DNA from: Adineta vaga
Lineage: Eukaryota > Animalia > Rotifera
Reading direction: 5' to 3'
Assembly: GCA_021613535.1 (NCBI GenBank)
Contig: CP075493.1
Location: 5,766,001 to 5,830,000 of the forward strand
DNA length: 64,000 nucleotides
The translations under genes and the position numbers were made by a program. Positions 10,092 through 32,897 of the stretch are shown here, one piece after another (position 1 is the first letter of the stretch; every line of letters begins with the position of its first letter). The notes under the pieces were generated by a model. That model was not told the origin of the DNA. It searched no databases and saw only the letters and a list, made by a program, of their open reading frames with translations.

Positions 10092-10408
10092 AAAATAAAA
10101 CAATATTCACTTCGAAGAGAAAACTGGGTCGCTTTTGTATATTATTTTTCATTACTTTCTCAATAAAAGATAAACAAGCCGGTGATATAAAATGAATTTT
10201 TCTTATACTGCATCATTCTAATCAAAAAGTTTTTATAGGTATTGCAGAATACTAAATAAGTTTATTTCGAGAAATAAATATCACTAAATAGTCTTCATAT
10301 TAATTCATCAATCTTTTTTACGATATCATCATGTGTCATTTATATGACCGATGAACTTCTTTTCTTACTATTCATCGTCAAATTTCTCTCCTCTAACTTA
10401 CCCATAAG

Positions 10409-13400
10409 ATGAAACTGTTCAAATATTTATGTCATTTAAACTTATTCAAAAATGTAGATGATAATGAATATCAAAATCGTTCAAATATAGTTGCTACACG
10501 AATATATATCATAACATTTCTATTCGTTCTTATTAGTATTATCGTTACTCTTTGGTTAACTGTAGAAATCAATAGTATAACAATTAATAATCCAACACAA
10601 GAACAATTTCATACTTTTCCACATGATTCGCAATGTCCCTGTTCGCAATTATCTCTTTCCTATGGAACTTTCGTTACATTGAATGAAAAATTCCATCAAG
10701 TATGTTCAAGTGATTTTGTGTCTGATCGGTGGATTCAAATGCTCTTTACCGGTTCAAATACAAGCAATTTTTATCAATCGGATATTCGATTAATGGGTAG
10801 TTCATCATTTCAAGTGCTTGCTAGTCTTTGTCATCTGGCAAAGAAACGTGTTCAAGCTGATTTAAATTCTCTCTATGCTAGTCAATTCATTAGTACAAAC
10901 ATTCTCTATGATAATTTACTTCAATTAACAGTAGAAGCATCGATTCTTGAATTTAAATTAACAATGTCATTTCTATTTCAATCTCAACTTCATTTAATCA
11001 ATCAAATGATGTTTGCAAATCAATTAATGCCTGCACGAGAAACAACTTTTCATCTTTATTTTTATGATCAACTATATGCTGAGTCGACAACATTATCAAT
11101 TATCGAACGTGTATTCTTAGGAGCTAATAATTCTTATTGTTTGTGTTCTGGGAATTATTCTTGTAGTGAACAATCAGGAATATATTCTATCAATATAACT
11201 AACAACAGTTTAACAAAATCTTCTATTGTATCATTGATGACCATTCCAGGTTTTCTGGCTGGTTGTACATCGATTCATTCACTTATGCAATCAACTCTCG
11301 AATGTTTTTATGATCAATTATGCTTAAATACTATTCTTTCATATATAACTAATGAAGACAATTTTACTGCAATGTCTGAATTTGAATTAACTCATTTTCA
11401 AACAAATTCAACTATTCAAACAATCGTTGATCAGATGATGTTAGAAGATTTGACATATAATATATCTTATGAGAAATATTTTGCGCAATGTAAACCATTA
11501 ACATGTACCTATATGAATATGAAACGTCGAGATTTTGTTTATATTCTAACGAAAATTATTGGTTTACTTGGTGGATTAACAATCGTATTAGGATTGCTTA
11601 TTCCACTAATTGTTCGGTATATTCGCAATCGACGATTACAAAATGAATCAACACGTAAAACAAGTTGTAAGTGAAAATAAATTTCTTCAAAAATCTTCTA
11701 TAATTTTCTTTTTTCTAGTACGCATCAAATTTATCGAATATAAATCACGTATGAGTCATATTTTCAAAGAATTGAATATCTTCAAAACGAATTCTAATAA
11801 TAATTGTTACACTAATTATGAACGTCAAATTACACGAATATTTATACTTCTTCTTATAACATCATTTACAACTATCATTATCTATCTTCTATCTACTGAA
11901 GATATTTATCGCAAAAGTATTGTAAATCCAAATGAAACAACTTATATGAAATTAAAACAACAATATCATGATTATGTTAGTTGTCCATGTACACAATTAT
12001 CAACATCCTATGAGAAATTTCTTTCTATTACTCCAATTTATCATGAAATCTGTTCGAGTGATTTTATTTCATCTGAATGGATGGATTTTCTTGCATTATT
12101 TACATCATATACAATGGTAGCTGATTTACGGTATGAAATTAATTTACTTGCACAATTTAATATTCTTAATACATTTTGCATGAGTACTGCTCAGACAATT
12201 GAAGATGCTCGACGAATTTTTCTTCAAAATCAATATGTTACTTCGGAAATTATTGATGAAGATATCTTTCGAAATCATATATCTTCGTTAATTGATAATT
12301 GGAAAGCAAATATTCAGAATCAATACGTACGTTTAATTGATTTCATTCGAGAAACAAATCAAGGAAATAAATTGATTAATTATTTACATAATATCGATTT
12401 TAAATTAAATTTAACGACAAAAGAAATGCATTATAAATCTCTAAATTATTCAAATTGTTCTTGTGATTTATTTAGTTCATGTACGATGCCTATAGTTAAT
12501 GCATTACCAAGACGACTTTCTTTTGGTTATAGTCCTTCTTCTTTGAATATTCCTAATTTTTTCATTGGTTGTTTTCCTACGGAAGCACTTTTTCAATCAA
12601 CATTAGAATGTTTTGCTAATCAAACTTGCTTAAATAATATGATTGAATATATTTATGCAATTTACTTTGATTATGTCGTACCGAAAAATTTTATCATATT
12701 AAATATAACTGATCAACAACAAAATGAAACGATTGAAACAATTATTAATCGATTGATGGTTAATTCTTGGATAGAAAATATATCATTTTCTTCATATTAT
12801 AATTCATGTGCTCCAGTTTGTACGTATGAATATAAAAGTTATCGTCGTCTTATTGTTGTTCTTTCAACAGTAATAGGCGTATTTGGAGGATTAGCAAAAG
12901 GTTTAAAACTTCTTATTTCGATTATTATTATATGCATTGAAGATTTAGTCACTATCAATTCATTTGCTTCCGTGACACAACTAATGAAATGTATTTTTTA
13001 TGTAAATAATGATCAAACAAGAATGAATCGATTACATTTTTTATTCTTACTTATTACTTTAATAATTCTTTATCTTGTTTCATATTTATCTATACAAACA
13101 AAGACCATTGAAATCAATCAACCATCACTTTCTATTTATGAAGATTTAGTAAGACAATATCCGGAAAAATTAGAATGTTCATGTTCAAAAATATCCATTG
13201 AATATGAAACATTTTTTAGAATAAAACCACGTTTTCATCAATTATGTTCGAGTGATTTTATATCGAACGATTGGATTGTATATATTTATAAAAATAACAA
13301 TCAATCAATTTCCGAAGATTCTCAAAAAATCCTTCTTGGACAATATCAATTATTAGCATCATTTTGTCAGTTATCGAAGGAAACAGTTGAGAATGCAATT

Positions 13401-14096
13401 TTACAATTAGCTACAACTGATTATATTAATATGAAATTGATTCCTATTAATAGATTCTATGAACAAGTATATAAAATAAAGGATGATTTTGAACTACGTA
13501 CTGTTCAATCTTTTATCAATATTCTTGATCTTATTCGAGAAATGACTGCAAATAATCTGTTAATGACTATGCATTCAACAAATTGGAAGCATACTTCGAT
13601 TCAAAGAACTGCTCGTTATTGGGATTATCAAACAATTTCAATGAAATATAATCAATGTGATTGTGGATTATCACCGAAATGTATTCATTCATATAGAAAT
13701 ATGACATTTGGTTGTTATTCTTTAGAAACATTACTTCAGTCTACACTTCAATGTTTTTATAATCAAGAATGTATTGATTCAATGCAGTATTTTCAAGCAT
13801 TAAATTTTTCCACTAATAAAAGTCAATTTGATATTAATTCAACGGTAGAATTTATCTTAGAAAAACTTTTTATTGAAGAATATTATCTTGATATATCTTA
13901 TGATAATTACTTCAATCAATGTGCTGTATCATCATGTAGTTATTCATTGTGTGGAAATGGAAATCCGATCGATACGGCAGTTATGTTAATCGAACTTTTT
14001 GGTGGTTTATCAATAATTTCTCATTGGCTAATTATTGGAATTGTTCGATTTCATCAATATCTTAAGCAACGACAAATAAAATTAGAGATGTCTTGA
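10409..14096 (+). CDS. Uncharacterised ~1211-aa membrane protein built from three tandem TM-Cys-rich ectodomain-TM units
   Basis: ORFs 10409-11674 and 11610-14096 join in frame via intron 11667-11718 (gtaagt...ttttctag). Each unit repeats the motifs TR/NR-TM1, CPC/CSC, H(Q/E)xCSSDF, CxC..C, GC, QSTL(E/Q)CF, Y(F/Y)xxC..C(T/S)Y and xxGGL-TM2. Confidence 0.85.
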
Positions 14097-15524
14097 TAGT
14101 ATATATATATATATCAACTTTTGCGAAGTAATCATTTATTTGTTGTGTAAAATATGAAAATGTGAAAAGTATTTAATAATAATAATTTTTAATCAATAAA
14201 TATGATCGATACTTATGAAATCGTCCTCGTATAGCAATCGAATGAGTATGTGTGAGTGTGCCTATAGTTTAATATAACACCCTTACATCCTCTCCCGAGC
14301 TCAATGAATGCTCAATGCTAATATAGTGGCACATGTATATAGGAGGTAATACTTATAAACTCAACTCGTTTAAATGAATTTATGTATGCGGTATTCGTTC
14401 GCAACTGAATACGATTGCGCAGGGTGCTTTAAGACTGAGTGTGTTTGGCCGAAGATGATTTATTGACTGAATTTGAATCATTTTCAGGAATATTATCAAA
14501 AATATTGTTCAAATTTAAAACTGTACTCCATTAATCTTACGAGTTGTAGAATATCTTTGTTTGAATTTATTGATTTTAATATCCATCTGTTCAAGAAAAA
14601 GGATGAATATGGTTTATTGGAAGCAAAGAGTACATATGAAAAACAATTATATTTGATATAACAAGAAGAGATATTTCTAAGCATCTCTTCATATACGAGA
14701 TTCATTTCTGGATCACCATGAAGAGTAGATTTTTTACTTTCAGAGTTATTTCAGTCTTATGAAAACATTAACAGCATTTGCAGGGTATGTATAATTTGTA
14801 TGATTGGGCATACAAAGAAACATACGAAAATGAATGACAAACTTAAATGAAGAATGTGCGCGTGGGTATTTATATTAATCTATAGGCATACTCATCCCAT
14901 CTCGCTATTATTAGGAAATGGTTTACTGCCACGGATGGGTGCATTTAGAATGACTGATCTACTATCAACAGCACACGTATAATACTAAAGATGAACAATT
15001 TATCGTAATGTTCTTTATACTGAAAAGATTCAATGATTCAAGTACCAGTACATCAACGTTATTGTAAAACGAATATCTGACTAACTTCACTCTTGGGTAT
15101 TGCACTATATAAATTGTTGACATTATACTTTACTTTATATATACAAATGAACTGTGTCATCATGCTGATCCTGAATGCACGCATCGAATAATGAAGCGTA
15201 GATGGCGTTATCATCTAATATATAAAATATCTAAAGCCATCTATCACTTTGAAAGAAATTTCAACGAAATATTGTTAAAAAACATCTTCTCATGCAAAAT
15301 AATTAAAAGAAAAAAAATTAAAAAAATTGAAAAAAAAATATATTGTTTGTTGACTTCGGTTGCTCACCTACCATCGATATGGCTCCTTTGATCATCACCC
15401 ACCATCGACAACGACAAGATGAAAGAAATAAGCAATACACCCACATGATTCTTAACAAAAGATGATAATGGATGAATAAATCTTATAAACTTTGTTTTCT
15501 AGATCATTTCCTTTTTAGTTTCAG

Positions 15525-16274
15525 ATGAATCATCCAACAACTGCAACAATCAATAAACTAACAGACTATGATAAACTACAACAAATCCTGGATAAAGTAC
15601 GTGATATGAAACAAGCTCTTGCTGGCTTCTTCATTGAATATGAACGTGGTCAACTATCATGGCCAACAATTCTTGATCAAATGAGTCTTCTGTCTTCACA
15701 AATTACAACATTACGTGCATCAGTACGACATATTTTACCATCATTACGTACCAATTCTATTGTACCTATGTGTTTATCACCTGATAATGATGTAAATGTT
15801 GAACATTTAACTGAAAGACGTCTCTCAGTATTTAATCATGATTTCATGCCTCAATTATTACGTACCAAAAATTTACCTGAAATTGAAGAACGTGAACGTT
15901 TATTAAATGTCAATTCCACTAGTAATAATCTCGGTAGTACATATGGTCGTCCAATGTTAAATCCAAATGAAATTCAAATGCGTATACAAGAATTAAATTC
16001 AGCTTTACATAGTACAACTGATATTCTTCTACAAACGAAAGCAGCAACAGAGAAAACAGAAAAACAATTTGATTTACAACGTTTTACGAATCCAGCTGAA
16101 ACAAAACAATTATTAGACGCAATGAATTATGGTACAGTTCTTAAAACACCGGATACATCCGCATCTATAGCACGAAATGAACAAGCTAATATGAATCAAC
16201 AAATGTCAACTCAACCACAACGAGCAGCAGCTCCATCTCTAAGAATAAAAACAGTTGCAAAAGCAAATCGATGA
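15525..16274 (+). CDS. MED8: Mediator of RNA polymerase II transcription subunit 8
   Basis: Single-exon 249 aa with LSWPTILDQMSLLSSQ, VPMCLSPDND..LTERRLSVFNHDFMPQLLRTK..PEIEE, matching MED8 as recalled. Confidence 0.88.
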   Translation: MNHPTTATINKLTDYDKLQQILDKVRDMKQALAGFFIEYERGQLSWPTILDQMSLLSSQITTLRASVRHILPSLRTNSIVPMCLSPDNDVNVEHLTERRLSVFNHDFMPQLLRTKNLPEIEERERLLNVNSTSNNLGSTYGRPMLNPNEIQMRIQELNSALHSTTDILLQTKAATEKTEKQFDLQRFTNPAETKQLLDAMNYGTVLKTPDTSASIARNEQANMNQQMSTQPQRAAAPSLRIKTVAKANR

Positions 16275-16514
16275 AACAATAAATACCAATTTCTTTATGA
16301 TCATTTATGTACATGTTTATTAACTCAAGTTTTTTTTCTTCTTCTTCTAGATTTAAATATTTATCTCTTTTTATCAACGAGATATCAAGTATGAGAGAAA
16401 AACGAATCTTTCTCTAAATATATATATACATATATATATAAATACGTATATATTTATTTTATTTGATCAACATCAATTAATTAAAATAGAATATCGAAAC
16501 ATAGAATTATCAAT

Positions 16515-22775: not shown

Positions 22776-25700
22776 TTACGAGCACGTCATTGTTGGTGAA
22801 TGATTTTGATGATTTATAGTTTCTAATTGTATATGATCATTTGAACGTAAAGCACCACTTTGTTTTGTTTCAACTCCAGGAACTTGAATACGTTCTTCTT
22901 TCGGTAAACGATCTTTTTTTGTTTCTTCTTCCGTTTCACAATATACACTAAAACTCCATAGATATGTTCCAACACGAACTGCCTAGATGATTAAATAATA
23001 ACACATCATTTAATAGTTCAAGTCTCGTATATGTTTCGATTTTACTTACAGCAAAGACAGCAATACAAAATCCAATGATTGCTCCACCGATAACATCTGT
23101 TGCATGATGTTTAAAATCAGTTACACGCGATAAACAAGTAAAGAAAGCAACAGCAATACATAAACATTGAAGAAATGGTTTGAGAAATTGTAAATTAGGA
23201 CAAACAAGACGTGCTTCGAAATAAACCTATGAGAAAAAGAAAGTATGCGATTAGTTTAGTTTGATAGGACTAAACTTACGAAGAGAAAAACGAATGCATA
23301 TGTTGAATAACTTGAATGACCTGATGGAAATGACAGCTTTGCTTCTTGAAGTTCACTTTCCGATGCTGTTGTATTACAATGATGATCAAGAATATATCTA
23401 ATAGATAAATACATACATCTCTTTTTCTACAAAGTCATTCTAATAAGAAAATTTACTGAGAAATCTGTATAACACCACTGCCTGTTGATACACTTTTTGT
23501 ACATTGAATATTCATCCAAATTGGATTGCAAATACTTATATAATATGGTCTTAATCGACCAATCGTACCTATACGAATGTTCTATGTTAACAACAATAGA
23601 TTTGATATTTTATTAAACTCTTACGTTTGCCAACTTCTGTAATTAAAAAACAGATTGCAATACCAAGAAGAAATAAAAATGTTGATTGAAGAATTGTTTT
23701 AATATAATCCACTTGTCGTTGTCTCAAACTATTTCTACTTGGTCCCCGGCCACAATGAAACGGACGAACAACCCATATTTCCACAATACAAAACTATACA
23801 GAAAACAGAAAAACACAACGTATTTTCATTTTTCTATTCGAAAGAAAGTAAAGTACAAAAAAAGTTCATCAATGCTATAATATGAACATATCCATAGTAA
23901 GACAAGCTTTTTCTAATTGATACTAACATACTGACTAATACTTTTGTTACATAATGAAATACTTACAATAACAACCGGTCCGATTCCTCCATACACACCC
24001 AATAACCACATTGGAATAGTATCGTGTTTAAACGGATATTGAATCGATGTATCGTCACAATAAAATCCACGTTGTACTGGTTTAATTAATAAATATACCA
24101 ATCCGAAAACGAGACATGCTATACGGCAAAAAAAAGAAGAAAAGAATGTTTTGGATGATCAATTATGGACATACTTGCTGCAATTGCCAAAAAATCGAAT
24201 AGATTATTTAATAAAGCTCGTCGTTTGGGTTTTTTAGGTTGACTACCATGTTCGACGTCTTGATTGACATTTTTATCACCACCTAATTTATCCATAATAA
24301 ATTCTACTTCACTTGTCGGGGTTGATGCTGAAAGAAAAGAATTTTATTGTAAATTGAAACCTTCACTAGAAAAAAACATGAGAGAATGCTGTTTTTTAGT
24401 TTTTGTTTTAAAAAAAAGAAAAATTTTAAAGGAAAAAAGACTACTTGAGCATTTTTAATAGTTTTTTTCTCATAAATGTTTGTACTAAAGAAAATTAGAA
24501 CAAGAAAACAATGACGTCTTTTTTTTTACAGTGCTTCGCCTTCAGGAAATGTAAACTAGTCGTCTGTAATCATTGTTATTTCTTTTCTTTCTTCATATTT
24601 GATTATATCACTAAGTAACAATGATATTTCAAAATATCATTCGACAACTACGAGACAAACCTGAATAAGGCATTAAAATCGATTAATTCATACCAATTTT
24701 CACAAACGTTTCGTTTTTATTTGAAAAATTCTTTTATTTTGATAAACTGATAAGTAAAAATGATGTTTTTTTGGGTTGGTTGCTATCTAACTATTTATTT
24801 ATCTCCTTCTATACTTGTTTTTATCGTCATCTGAGTATATGAATAAGAAAGATGACTTTTTTTGTATCAAGCTGGATTACCTGATGAAGATCGAATAACT
24901 TACGAAAGAAAAAAATGAATTGTCAGGTGTTTTTTTCTAATACGTTTTTTTATTATACATATTCAATGATAACATGGAGAGAGAGAAAAAAAGGGTGAAT
25001 AATATGTAGGTAAAGAGTGACGTAAAACAGCAGAAGAGGTAAAGTATAGTTCGACGAGAACTATTAATCATCTCTTACTTACCAGCATTTCGTGATCGGG
25101 AAATGATCTGTTGTTGTGGTGGTGGTCGTTGGTCATTATCGTAATAGAATGCATTCGGTTTTTCATAGATATTTCCAGATCGATTTTGTCTTGGATAATT
25201 AAAATTAGATGTCAATGGGGGTGTTAATGGTTGAAATGTATCATATAACGGATTATATTCTGCTGTACCACGTTTTCGTGATGGATATCTTTCGAGAATA
25301 TATCGTTTATTTGTAGCTGAAGAAAGAAAAAAATCAGATCCATAATAATGACGATTCTCCGGGATGGAGAAGATCATGTTTTGTGTGTCAAAATGAAAAT
25401 GAAAGAGATAAAATGTAATGAATTTATAAATATAATTAAAATTCGAATATCATTGACATCTACTCACCATCAGAGGATTCATTCGATGGTGAAATCATAT
25501 AAATAATAGGTTTCATTTCGTCTGTTAGACTAATGTCATTCAATGTAACTCGATTAGTTTTATAATTTCAACGATTGCAATTCAAACCACCTACTTATTT
25601 GACATTTTATAACGGTTTTATTCATCTAGTCTTCTTTTTTTCTTCTTCTTCTTCTTCGTATGTCTCCATTCAATATGGTTCGTGTATTACAATCATAAAA

Positions 25701-26745: not shown

Positions 26746-27040
26746 TACAAATCAAGAATGAATAAATTTAGATGTACGATTTTCGTTGATTAATAAAAAA
26801 AGGACTTTTTTCGATTCAAGGTATCTTCACCTTTTTTTCATCCTTCCTTTGCTTTGCTTTCTTTGCTTTACTCTGCGTGGGCGGCTTTTTTGCATTCTGT
26901 TCTGTTTTTTTTCAGTGGTTTGTACTTGCACAACAGATTTGCAAGAACATGTTGCTGTTAGTTTTAAAAAAAAGTATATATACGCTTGTGAAGAATAGCT
27001 TTTCTCATACAAAATATTAATTTGAACAATATTATTCATC

Positions 27041-28788
27041 ATGTGTAGTGAAGCTGCTAAAGTTCTTCTTGCTGAAACATGGTCAGAAGATATTGATCCG
27101 ACAGGATGGTGGATGAGTGAAAAACTCGATGGTGTTCGGTATGAGATTTATTTGGAAAGAAAGAAAGCAATGCTTTGATTTTTGTTTTTCTTTTATAGAG
27201 CATACTGGAATGGAAAAAATTTTTATTCAAGACAAGGAAATCTTTTTCATGCACCTGATTTTTTCAAGGCTGCACTACCTAAAGTTCCACTCGATGGTGA
27301 AATATGGTAAAGTTGTTTTTCTTTTTTTCTTCTCCTGTAGTTATATATTTACCATTTCCTTTGCTTTCAGGTGTGGCCGGGGTTTATTTCAAAAATGTGT
27401 TAGTATTGTCAAAAAACAAGCAAATAAAGTGGTGCCTCAAGATTATAAACTACTGACGTATCTAATTTTTGACGCACCAACTCAAGGAGGAAAATATGAA
27501 GATCGTGTCAAATGGTTACAAGCAAATATTCCACAAGATGATGATAACTGTTATGCTACAGTTGTTGGTATTAAAAAATGCGAAGGTTTAGCACAATTAA
27601 AACAATATTTAGCTGATGTGAACAAAGCTGGTGGAGAAGGTATTATGCTTCGTAAACCAGGTAGTCTTTATGAACATAAACGTTCAACTACTTTACTGAA
27701 AGTAAAAACGTTTTATGACGAAGGTAAATAGAAGATAATACGAAAGAAACAATGAGTTTTTTTCTCTCTATTGTACTTTTATAGAAGCTCATGTCATTGG
27801 TCATAAACCGAGTAAAAGCTTAATTGGTATGACTGGTGCTCTTGAATGTGAATTACCGAATGGAAAACGATTTGATGTTGGTAGTGGACTTACTATGGAT
27901 CAACGACGAAAACCACCAAAAATCGGTTCAGTCATTACATTTAAATTTCAAGAATTATCCAATAGTGGTAGCCCACGATTTCCGACATTTCTTCGTGTTC
28001 GTACTGATCTGACATGGAATGATGTTCTTGAAGCAGCTAAAACAAAAAAACCTGTCAGTGTCATACAGAAAGTGGTTCCATCGGCAAAATTATCTAAACA
28101 ACATTCAATATTATTTTCTGTTATTCCATCACGTGATGCCAAAACCGATAAGAAAATCGTCACATCCGATGACGAAGATGAAGATGCACCATCTACATCT
28201 ACATCCACATCGACAAAGACGAATGATTCTCGACCGATGTGTAAATTTGGTGCAAAATGTTATCGAACAAATCCTGATCATCTAAAACAATATCAACATT
28301 CGTCATCCAGTACGAAACCTGCCAAAACTACGGAAGCTGAATCGACCAATAAAACTGCTAAAACTGCAGAAGCAGAATCTACAACCAAACCGCCCTGCAC
28401 ATTTGGTGCGAAATGTTATCGTACAAGTTCCATTCATTTAGCTACTTATTCTCATCCATCTAAAAATGGAACAAAGGAAGCGAGTGAAGAAGATATACTT
28501 GATACTCGTGAATTAGTTGAAGCTGAAGAACCTGCTTCACCAACCACAACTGATAATTTATTAGTCAAAGATAAAAATAAAGGCCTGACATTCGACGATG
28601 ATGATGATGAAAGTAATGATCAAGAAATGGTTAGTCGTTCTAAAAAAGATTGGACCAATCTTGAAAATAAATGCAAAGAACAAAGCAAACGTTTAGCATA
28701 TCTTGAAGAAATGTTTAAAACGACAAAACGATCGAATTCAACAACTGATAATAATGAAGAAAGCAACAAACGTATGAAAACAGATTGA
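27041..28788 (+). CDS. ligE: Bacterial-type ATP-dependent DNA ligase (ligase E-like) with two C-terminal PBZ zinc fingers; 4 exons
   Basis: Exons 27041-27138, 27199-27306, 27371-27723 and 27785-28788. Ligase motifs WWMSEKLDGVRAYWNG (KxDG), LDGEIW, IFDAP, GEGIMLR, LLKVK; OB domain FDVGSG..PPKIGSVITFKFQ..PRFPTFLRVR. PBZ fingers CKFGAKCYRTNPDHLKQYQH and CTFGAKCYRTSSIHLATYSH. Confidence 0.93.
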
Positions 28789-29234
28789 AACATTTTTTGT
28801 TTGTTGTATTTAATTACTCAACTAGTACATATTATCTTATTTTCGTTGTATTGTAATTTTGTTTTTTGAAAAAAAGAAAAGAAATCAATCTCATTATTTG
28901 AGATACATATAGACAAACAAAGAAATAATAATAATAATCATAGTAATAATTTAGAAGACAACAGATACATAAAAATAAAATAGAAAGAAATACATTTCGT
29001 TTATTTTCCTTTCTATCAGACAATGATTGTCATTAGAGAGAAAAATGTCTTATTTACACACAGGGATTCTCGCAAGACAGGTGACTAGAGTGCATAGATA
29101 TATGGCATATTTATGTGCGGTATGTATTCAAAGATGAGAAGATAAAAGAGAGAGAGAGAGAAGAAAGAAAGAAAGAAAGAAAAAAAAAGAAAACAGCAAC
29201 ACAGGGATATTGGCAAGCGTTGTCACATTCACTG

Positions 29235-32200
29235 TCATACCGTTTGTTTGTCATCTGTTGTTGGTTTATTTGTTATATCACTAAGGTTTGTTGGTATTGT
29301 TATAGTACGTGAATCATCTCCTAATAAATCATTTGTTGAACCTTGTTCTTCTACAGGTGTTAAACTATTTGTTTTTCGTCTTGCTAAACTTCTATCATCT
29401 GTATCGGCTGGCAAATTCAAATCATAACGATGTGTTGATGATTCACTTTGAGTGGAATGAAGAAGGACAATATTATGTTGTATAGATGCAGATGATGGTC
29501 GATGTTGTATCACATTCATTGTATTTATGGTATGACCAGTCGATGCTGATGCACGTGGTGTTAATGAAAGTGGCAATTGAAAATCACCCAATTCTTCATC
29601 TAATTCTTCTTCATTTGTTGTCGCATTCGTATTATTCATACGATCCTTTGAAAACATAAAAAGAATCAATAATAATATTATTCATCTAGTTGAGATGCCA
29701 CTAATACTGAATAATTATTCTCTTTCAGATAATAAAGATCTGTTTTTTTTTAATCGGAAATGAATCTTTGTAAGCTTAACAAAAGAAAAAAGTAATCAAT
29801 TTATAATCCATATCAAGGACTTCTATTCATCAGATGCCAAGAAACGATATGTAATGGAGTTGGGCAAAAATCAGTTTTGTTTAATATCCTTCTTTGCATA
29901 GAAATCACTAACGTTCCTGAAAAGTCCTAACATCTAATTCAAAGAGGTTAATTCGATCTCAATTGAATGTTGATATGATTTGAAATAACAAAGTTCTCTA
30001 TTGCTTTGACTATATCTTGTCATTTTCATTGAAAATTACCGTATTATTTTTCAAAGTGCTCTTCTTTCTTCTTCGTACGCTACAACACCACCATTTTCGA
30101 CGATTTAATATAAATTGTCTTGCAGGAGAACCTAATCGAGCGATACCAGTTGCTGGATGGCCACCAGTTGCAGTATTTGCACCGCCACCACCCATTAATA
30201 CATCTGGACCCATTTCAACAAATTCCCGATCCTGAACGAAAAAGAAAAAGCCCCAGGATGATGAATGAATTATTACGAAGAAAATTTTTTATTCTCTCAT
30301 ACAGTTGTTAATTCTAAGCAACGAAGTAAATGATGATGTTGTAATTCAAATGGATTAACAAGATTTTTGTCAACAGGTCTATCAGGATCATCAAGATATT
30401 GTTCATGACGTCGTTTAGCAGCAACAAATGCATTACTGGTTGCATTTCGTGCTAGACGTATTCGTGTTTGACGTGCTTTTCGTTGTGCTTTCATTTTATC
30501 CGCTCGTTGACTTTGATGATAAATTCGACTAAAATTTGATACAATAACAGGAACAGGAAGAGCAATCACCAGTACACCACTTAAACTACATACACCACCA
30601 ACAATTTTACCAGCCCTAAACATTTCATAGATGTTTATATTCTAAAGATTATTGCATTACTCACCAAGTTTTTGGTACTATATCGCCATAACTAAAGTAA
30701 ACAGAAAGAAAACCAATCAATTTCAATGCCTAGACAAATGCTCTTTCTATCATCAGTATTATAAGCAAAATTGTTTATTTTCTGTCAGATTTAGTATGTT
30801 TTTTTTTCGATGATATGTATGTTATATATCATTTCGAAGATATTTTACTCAATATGACAAGAATCAATTAATTATGTCCTTTGTATATAATTATAATCAA
30901 TCATTTTTTTTCACATGCTCAATTCTCAATAGAAATAAAGCTGTTATTCTCTGTAGTATATCAGATATAATAGAATAAACATTACTATCTGTATACATAT
31001 ATATTTATATATATATATATTAAATTAGTTAGTTCACACGTAATTCTAGCTCGAGGCGTTGACAGGATCAGTTTTGTTTAGATTTATCTGATAATTGTTG
31101 TTTTTTCATTATAGTATGAAACTATCCAATTCCAAATCGAATTTTTCTTTTCTATGTAATCTAAGGATTATGAATGAGATCAAAGTATAGTTGTATATCT
31201 ATCAAATGTGAAGTATCTAAAAATAATAATAATAATAATAATGTAAGAAAACATGAGGGATTTGTTTTTGTTTGCACCTTTTCTTTTGTTTCCATGAACA
31301 AGAAATATAATAAGTGATGATAACTATTTAATTCAATTACAGATTGACTTGTTACAAGTTATATATCGTAAATGATTTGCATCAATGATTTTATCATGTT
31401 CAAAACTCGAAACAATTGAATAAATATATTCTTTATAGACTTTGACATTATTAATGAATGTCAAGCAATCAATAATAATAATCAGTTTTTTTTTATCATA
31501 GCTATTTGTCTACCTTTTCAACTCTGTAAGAAAATCAATCATTTCTAGCTTCTTACATTTTATATATATACACATGACCTTTGAAAGCTACAGATATAAT
31601 CGTATGTTATTTATAGTTATTGAATAAGATCATGTATCCCTAGGATCCCTATTATTCAGTTCTATAATTATCTTCATATTCATTCTTACCCAAGTGTTGT
31701 CATTGTAACAATAGTATACCAAAATGCAGCTGGTATCGATGTAAATTTTGTATTTACAACACTTTTTTCGGCATAATACATAACAGTAGCAAATATAATA
31801 ATAGCCATTGTTAATGAAAATAAGAGAAAACCAAGTTCACTAGCACAACTTTTTAATGTATAACCTAGGACTCTTAAACCTTGGCTATGTCGAGAAAATT
31901 TAAATATACGAAATACACGAAATACACGAAGAGTAACAAATGCGCCACTAACTTCGCCTTTCTGATGCATAAATAATCCAATATAATACGGCATAATTGC
32001 AACGACATCAATAACAGACTAGAAAATAAGATAACATAAGAAAAGTCAAGTACATGTTTTTTTCTGTTATAAATAAATCTATTTTACCATAACAGATCGA
32101 ATAAATTTCAATCGATCAGGTGCAGCATAAAGCCGAAGAAAATATTCAACAGTAAATATCATAACACAAGCCGTATCAAGACAAAAGAATTGCCGAGAGA

Positions 32201-32897
32201 AACGTTCGCCACATGATCTTGCATAACCTGTTTCAGGATCTGTTCCACACGTGACTGTATCTAAGACATTGGCAATAACACTAACGGCAATAAAAAATCC
32301 AGTCACATAATAAAAGACAGATGCCATCGTTGATACTTGTGGATTTTCAAATGCACGCCACATTGTTTCACGTATTGATTGAGGTTTCGGTTGGGCTTTA
32401 TCTTCATCTTCATGTAGACGATCATCAATTAATCTTTCATTATTTTCACGTTTACGATCTCGATAATCTTCATAGCAACAATCGCCAATAATATCAGGTA
32501 GAATACCAAAGAATGCTAATTCTTCATCATATGCTGCAATACATTCATGTTTTGGATAATGTAATTTACCAGTACGATAAAAATTTAATATAACACGAAA
32601 TACATCAGGATCACGATCGAAGAAATATTCACGTGTATCTTCATCATAAAAGAATTCTTTTTCATTCGAGCCTAATAATGATTCAGGATATTTTTCTAAT
32701 GTTGAACGCCAACATTCAAAACGACGACCACTAACATTGATAATGATTTTTTCATCGCAACGACGATCATTTGTACTTGGCGATGCACCATTTGTTGGAA
32801 TACGAAATGGAGGTGGTGGTAAAGGGTTTTTTGCCAATGGAACCCAACCAATAGCTGCTGCACGAGCAAATGGAAGCCATGCAGCTACACTAGCCAT
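29235..32897 (-). CDS. KCND2: Voltage-gated potassium channel Shal/Kv4, multi-exon
   Basis: [19 protein letters not shown]-terminus, T1 domain, S4 [15 protein letters not shown], pore TMTTLGYGDIVP, S6 [29 protein letters not shown]. The KCND paralog number cannot be determined. Confidence 0.96.

Follow-up and report, generated by a model that had tools for sequence, protein, structure and literature searches.

[quoted passage not shown] The two-PBZ tail and a proposed role of PAR were described in 2018 and 2023 (PMC6264785, PMC10665377), and for LigK-B, which has the same architecture, cooperative PAR binding by the tandem PBZ was put forward as a hypothesis (PMC6264785). Tandem PBZ fingers increase PAR affinity about 1000-fold (PMC4030884). 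AvLigE-B is induced by X-rays (mRNA 41-fold, protein 6-7-fold) alongside PARP2, pol beta and PNKP (PMC10665377), and a log2 fold change of 7.3 was also reported (PMC10809525). It shows somatic expression together with PARPs (bioRxiv 10.64898/2026.04.30.722046) and is also induced on recovery from desiccation. The protein builds up in somatic nuclei and its share of the nick-sealing activity in irradiated extracts is about 35%; moreover, AvLigE protects HEK293T cells (PMC10665377). In human cells the one-PBZ A protected better than B, ligation in human extracts was 5.4-fold for A and 1.9-fold for B, and LIG3 is X-ray-induced as well, 12-fold (PMC10665377). Lig E grips DNA through a ‘lysine fork’ in the OB domain (G-K-G-K-aromatic) and a second motif (F-basic-I-G-S-G-F-x-D), and alanine mutants of these DNA-binding motifs lost 50-80% of their activity (PMC6144786).

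The stretch of DNA analysed here (the window) comprises 64,000 nucleotides of A. vaga contig CP075493.1. It contains on the forward strand a gene of four exons (1563 nt, 520 aa), which had zero internal stops in a spliced-frame check:

27041-27138, + strand: exon 1, with the ATG, the start of the adenylation domain and motif I with catalytic Lys28 (27122-27124); the start of the published AvLigE-B gBlock is identical
27139-27198, + strand: intron 1, 60 nt, GT..AG, which cuts an Arg codon of motif I
27199-27306, + strand: exon 2, with the remainder of motif I and motif III (27290-27301)
27307-27370, + strand: intron 2, 64 nt, GT..AG
27371-27723, + strand: exon 3, with motifs IIIa (27468-27479), IV (27633-27653) and V (27693-27707); PF01068
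27724-27784, + strand: intron 3, 61 nt, GT..AG
27785-28788, + strand: exon 4, with the OB domain, linker, two PBZ, acidic tail, helix, basic end and stop
27973-27992, + strand: perfect match to the published forward qPCR primer for AvLigE-B
28161-28180, - strand: perfect match to the published reverse qPCR primer for AvLigE-B

It is virtually certain that this gene is A. vaga AvLigE-B itself, published by Nicolas 2023 and, as LigK-B, by Hecox-Lea 2018. The two AvLigE-B primers each match with 0 mismatches, where 0 matches are expected by chance, and a by-eye comparison showed that the published synthetic B cDNA (gBlock) starts as the spliced model does. In the exon 4 tree the window sequence falls within the B clade (support 99/96). 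The window copy is located on C1 of the six-contig, 100.8 Mb genome and the sole other PF14743 gene found is on C4. The earlier note had mentioned a report of a horizontally acquired LigE in A. vaga; the acquisition stands, but the window gene is not a relative of the reported gene, it is that gene. The gene and its two-PBZ architecture are thus already published, as are its induction by radiation, its presence in the nucleus and its nick-sealing activity. Neither PMC10665377 nor PMC6264785 describes four observations that are presented below: the linker conserved after the OB domain, the helix near the C-terminus, the loop change specific to B, and protist relatives that carry the tail.

The C1 and C4 ohnolog blocks are collinear over about 40 kb. 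A Shal/Kv4 potassium channel gene (window 29235-32897, - strand) is convergent with the ligase gene and also neighbours the C4 ohnolog as well as the ligase of Didymodactylos and that of an environmental bdelloid contig. Since this neighbour is shared across bdelloids, the insertion site of the ligase is older than the bdelloid radiation. Upstream, a PAP2-family lipid phosphate phosphatase-like gene (22800-24300, - strand) is also present in the C4 block, while the region of about 10100-16500 has almost no counterpart in this otherwise collinear block. Contamination was rejected, because the introns are spliced, the ohnologs are collinear and the Shal neighbour is also found in Didymodactylos.

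All three spliceosomal introns that had been noted from the letters alone were absent from contigs of X1 and X3, two runs of a single study that are probably RNA, and intron 3 also from those of X8. The RNA status of these runs is a guess, although contigs derived from DNA would not lack three GT-AG introns. The position of intron 1 is common to the window gene, copy A and Didymodactylos, and motif I straddles this intron (27116-27208); catalytic motifs I, III, IIIa, IV and V are all intact in the spliced model. Pfam detected PF01068 in exon 3 (E 7.6e-8), and PF14743 (E 2.3e-25) and two PF10283 PBZ (E 3.5e-23) in exon 4. Since the OB domain and both PBZ lie in one exon and one open frame, they belong to the same transcript, and overlapping RNA-like contigs span 26995-28998. 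These contigs have one additional Asp codon in the poly-Asp run at 28596, an allele or strain variant. No signal peptide was detected in exon 1 by a crude test (maximum 10-residue hydropathy 1.16), in agreement with the earlier note, and an in-frame stop lies directly upstream of the ATG. Folding of the 3' UTR showed nothing unusual (z -1.4). A Pfam Toxin_24 match was rejected as spurious, being under its cut-off and sitting on a CGRG stretch of the ligase core. The joined spliced model was used only for the frame check and pairwise identities. Homology searches were done by single exons, and the A. steineri B orthologue P0003 (96% core identity) was the proxy for the window core in core searches, fold and core trees.

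The core is Lig E-like by sequence and fold. Its top PDB matches were Lig E structures (4d05, 8u6x, 6gdr), followed by Chlorella ligase (E 1e-52 vs 1e-13), and human ligases had 15-19% identity in the fold search. With NCBIfam PRK09125 (cut-off 200) the orthologue P0003 scored 296.7 and the window exons separately 82 and 89. The compact architecture described earlier, with adenylation and OB_2 domains only, was borne out: the DNA-binding domain PF04675 and the OB domain PF04679 are absent, which excludes metazoan LIG1/3/4, and conventional ligase loci on C2, C3 and C5 match the window exons only at E 0.004 or worse. The earlier note had offered a Lig E/Chlorella-virus type; the Lig E part holds, but the Chlorella part does not, as the latch insert is missing and the short OB loop shows no insert when aligned to Psychromonas Lig E. 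A canonical proteobacterial Lig E was rejected too, given that there is no leader peptide, that a tail of 260 residues with two PBZ is appended beyond the core and that both DNA-binding motifs are altered. The nearest bacterial kin, with up to about 53-55% identity, are leaderless ligases of Planctomycetota, Myxococcota and Verrucomicrobiota, many of them WGR-fused, and not periplasmic proteobacterial ones. WGR is a DNA-break-binding domain that also occurs in PARPs. A strongly hydrophobic N-terminus was found in 0/66 of these nearest bacterial kin. The Planctomycetota/Myxococcota kin (L027-L106; P0152) carry at the N-terminus a roughly 80-residue extension that is conserved and that in P0152 had no Pfam match, and many have a C-terminal WGR. 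Leaderless Myxococcales ligases had already been linked to eukaryotic sequences (PMC8455567).

Exon 4 encodes the following features:

27802-27828, + strand: remodelled, B-specific ‘lysine-fork’ loop of the OB domain; x-S-K-S-L, one residue shorter, replaces the Lig E G-K-G-K-aromatic
27826-28002, + strand: OB domain PF14743
27871-27900, + strand: second Lig E DNA-binding motif, with Asp at the basic position and Leu for Phe
28000-28173, + strand: post-OB helix and conserved linker, common to Soliformovum and other microbial-eukaryote ligases
28240-28299, + strand: PBZ finger 1, Cys/Cys/His/His, Phe and Tyr-Arg kept
28321-28383, + strand: S/T-rich spacer with a nearly duplicated 9-residue unit (28321-28347, 28357-28383)
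28396-28455, + strand: PBZ finger 2, Cys/Cys/His/His, Phe and Tyr-Arg kept
28480-28623, + strand: disordered acidic region with a conserved EEPASPT (28525-28545) and a poly-Asp run (28594-28608)
28642-28734, + strand: C-terminal helix of 31 residues, coiled-coil-like, pLDDT about 90
28768-28785, + strand: basic C-terminus, candidate nuclear localisation signal

In the structure model of exon 4 the OB domain is folded, whereas the tail is disordered apart from the two fingers, which are small and folded, and a single long helix. The two PBZ cores lie exactly where the earlier note had placed them, and the acidic and S/T-rich patches and the basic KRMK end are as it described, while the conserved linker and the helix had been missed. 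The fingers match APLF PBZ structures (E 1e-11) and retain the zinc ligands and Tyr-Arg; differences from the APLF Tyr/Lys are Phe in PBZ1 and Thr in both fingers. Genome-wide, at least 29 PBZ matches were found, many as tandem pairs.

The ohnologs differ in both DNA-binding motifs and tail. The shortened x-S-K-S-L loop and GSGL are present in the window and in 16/16 B clusters with a readable loop, whereas G-K-G-N and GSGF or GTGF were found in 16 other clusters, every named A copy among them. The C-terminal helix is present in B, Didymodactylos and Soliformovum, and missing from the named A copies. The G-K-G loop occurs together with two PBZ and the helix in Didymodactylos, and several early-branching environmental copies combine A-type motifs with two PBZ; this combination is therefore the ancestral state. 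The ohnologs have divided these ancestral features between them: B retains two PBZ and the helix but has a remodelled loop, and in A the loop is preserved while the helix is gone and the second PBZ has degraded, with remnants in A. steineri A and Rotaria A. Two bdelloid A-clade ligases near the Adineta A copies (P0062 and P0065, Logan) have zero PBZ, which represents either more tail loss or a third lineage. With its tail retained and its loop altered, B may lean on PAR tethering. Since the first fork lysine, the most important one, is retained in B, we offer an effect of the loop change on DNA binding by B as a hypothesis only; weaker binding would fit the published difference in ligation between A and B in human extracts.

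AvLigE-B is a damage-inducible nuclear ATP-dependent ligase, and we propose that it is of microbial-eukaryote origin and PAR-tethered through its tandem PBZ; we give this whole explanation a probability of roughly 0.78. PARPs would build PAR at breaks, and the tandem PBZ, for which PAR binding is predicted from their likeness to APLF, would tether the ligase to it, with the disordered tail as a flexible arm. Once pol beta and PNKP have processed the ends, the nick would be sealed by the minimal core, which lacks both a DNA-binding domain and a latch and whose OB DNA-binding loop is remodelled in B. The A. vaga genome contains two XRCC1 loci and one LIG3 BRCT locus besides conventional ligases, and LigE therefore seems to supplement the XRCC1-LIG3 route; LigE-B would act alongside XRCC1-LIG3 and not in its place, while its independence from XRCC1, which the earlier note had assumed, is plausible. 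The proposed link to radiation and desiccation tolerance is supported by the published induction. Two PBZ do not predict benefit in human cells, since it was the one-PBZ A that protected better there (PMC10665377).

Alternatively, PBZ and the acidic and helical tail could mainly form a scaffold or a histone/chromatin module, comparable to an APLF-like chaperone, MDC1-like PST repeats or a dimerising helix, with a ligase that finds nicks itself and PAR as a mere modifier. The idea was proposed in PMC10665377, the acidic tract and conserved helix do exist, Lig E cores bind nicks unaided, B retains the first fork lysine, and the one-PBZ A is more active in human cells. We nevertheless regard it as unlikely, because the PAR-contacting residues are kept in both fingers across B copies and protists, and induction is confined to the two-PBZ copy and coincides with that of the PARPs.

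The closest named non-bdelloid relative is a protein of Soliformovum irregulare (EukProt EP01119 P017480, P0060; Amoebozoa, Variosea), and Planoprotostelium, a variosean like Soliformovum, was the closest in Nicolas et al. (PMC10665377). About ten further sequences share the post-OB linker, most with two or three PBZ. The linker profile gave 88-115 bits for nine non-rotifer eukaryote proteins; it was built partly from six of the nine, and P0204, P0205, P0206, P0208 and P0211 were not used in building it. One tailed relative sits in a gene-dense non-rotifer eukaryotic contig with 54% GC (GCA_040384145.1) and has a different intron. This contig also carries an MCM6 gene with a weak intein match (L020:15751-18591). 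P0096, annotated in UniRef as a ‘3-ketoacyl-CoA synthase’ of ‘Hirondellea gigas’, is a misannotated Lig E-PBZ protein in the protist clade and probably comes from a microbe associated with this animal. Where measured, GC of the non-rotifer members was 48-64%. No introns shared with protist copies were found in two genomic copies; all three intron sites of the window gene are shared with copy A and Didymodactylos. An Atlas search returned zero for exon 4 and, for P0060, only leads scoring below 0.9.

A core-only tree, from which linker and PBZ were excluded (48 rows, LG+G4; long branches and redundant rows excluded), grouped bdelloids and tailed eukaryotes in one clade of 23 rows (99/99), apart from bacteria, molluscs and fungi. 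In AU tests bdelloid+mollusc was rejected (p 0.0002), bdelloid+bacteria was weakly rejected (p 0.031) and bdelloid+Mortierellaceae clade was not rejected (p 0.10). Because tailed eukaryotes share the linker and tandem PBZ and group with bdelloids on the core alone, the tail looks inherited, and the most parsimonious interpretation is transfer of the complete gene from a microbial eukaryote. The AU test speaks, if weakly, against a direct bacterial donor (p=0.03). The description of a domesticated bacterial ligase fused to PBZ is misleading, as the nearest kin are microbial eukaryotes that already have the linker and tandem PBZ. A single transfer of a ligase-linker-PBZ-PBZ-helix gene would have occurred before the bdelloid radiation, with introns gained later. 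We infer the donor lineage and the transfer direction, and the tree did not single out a sister of bdelloids within the 99/99 clade; a variosean amoeba is our best guess, based on one transcriptome protein (Soliformovum) and environmental contigs.

A different origin is implied by the domestication in the earlier note and was also suggested in PMC10665377 (‘later acquisition during metazoan evolution’), which notes C-terminal PBZ in Mortierella and Thecamonas: a ligase of bacterial type would have gained the PBZ tail by fusion within rotifers or metazoans. Bacterial homologs have no PBZ, the PBZ matches in the A. vaga genome (at least 29) are potential donors, and the PBZ of molluscan homologs are N-terminal, so that PBZ seem to be shuffled readily. 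However, non-rotifer eukaryotes share the whole linker, the tandem layout and in some cases the helix start, and both the 99/99 grouping on the core without tail and the AU tests against bdelloid+mollusc and bdelloid+bacteria oppose such a fusion, which we consider improbable. Reverse transfer from rotifers to amoebae or other protists, or contamination as the source of the protist-like sequences, is very improbable: the tree gives no direction within the 23-row clade and most relatives are environmental contigs, but diversity is far greater among the non-rotifer members (core identity to bdelloid B 58-66%) than among bdelloids (83-96%), one relative lies in the non-rotifer eukaryotic contig mentioned above, and monogononts do not have the gene (PMC10665377, PMC6264785).

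Transfer of the complete, tailed gene would correct where the PBZ fusion arose, placing it in a ligase subfamily that is widespread among microbial eukaryotes and would already have been linked to PAR. The gene is a real, well-studied and published case of horizontal transfer that aids radiation tolerance. A more specific scenario, in which a ready-made PAR-guided ligase came from a variosean amoeba-like donor, the copies split its features after genome doubling and B became PARP-gated with a weakened loop, is tentative and in our view rather doubtful as a whole. If B is indeed PARP-gated, this would explain why it is induced in vivo and yet weaker than A in a PAR-free nick assay. The loop difference offers a residue-level reason for the unexplained A vs B paradox in PMC10665377, which bears on the use of LigE ligases for radiotolerance of cultured cells.

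Compared to known systems, the window gene shows no difference in identity from the AvLigE-B records (UJR14855.1, FUN_001822; PMC10665377, PMC6264785), which likewise have two C-terminal PBZ within S/T-rich repeats. AvLigE-A (I4U23_019330, P0051) has 83% core identity (72% over aligned columns) and the same three introns and collinear neighbourhood, but has one PBZ and no C-terminal helix, kept the G-K-G loop and GSGF and is not radiation-induced. The Soliformovum ligase (66-68% core identity) shares the linker, tandem PBZ, acidic tract, helix start and basic end; unlike the window protein, it has a third PBZ near the C-terminus and kept the basic residue of the second Lig E motif. Proteobacterial Lig E (4d05, 6gdr, 8u6x) has the same PF01068+PF14743 core with about 37% identity, and 6gdr compared to the P0003 core fold gave a TM-score of 0.87 by target length, whereas the window protein is nuclear and not periplasmic, and has a long tail and altered DNA-binding motifs. 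Lastly, APLF has, like the window protein, tandem PBZ of two C-x-[FY]-G-x-x-C-Y-R...H...H fingers (PDB 2kuo, 2kqb), but in the window protein the spacer is longer (52 residues between the starts of the two fingers) and the fingers are joined to a ligase.
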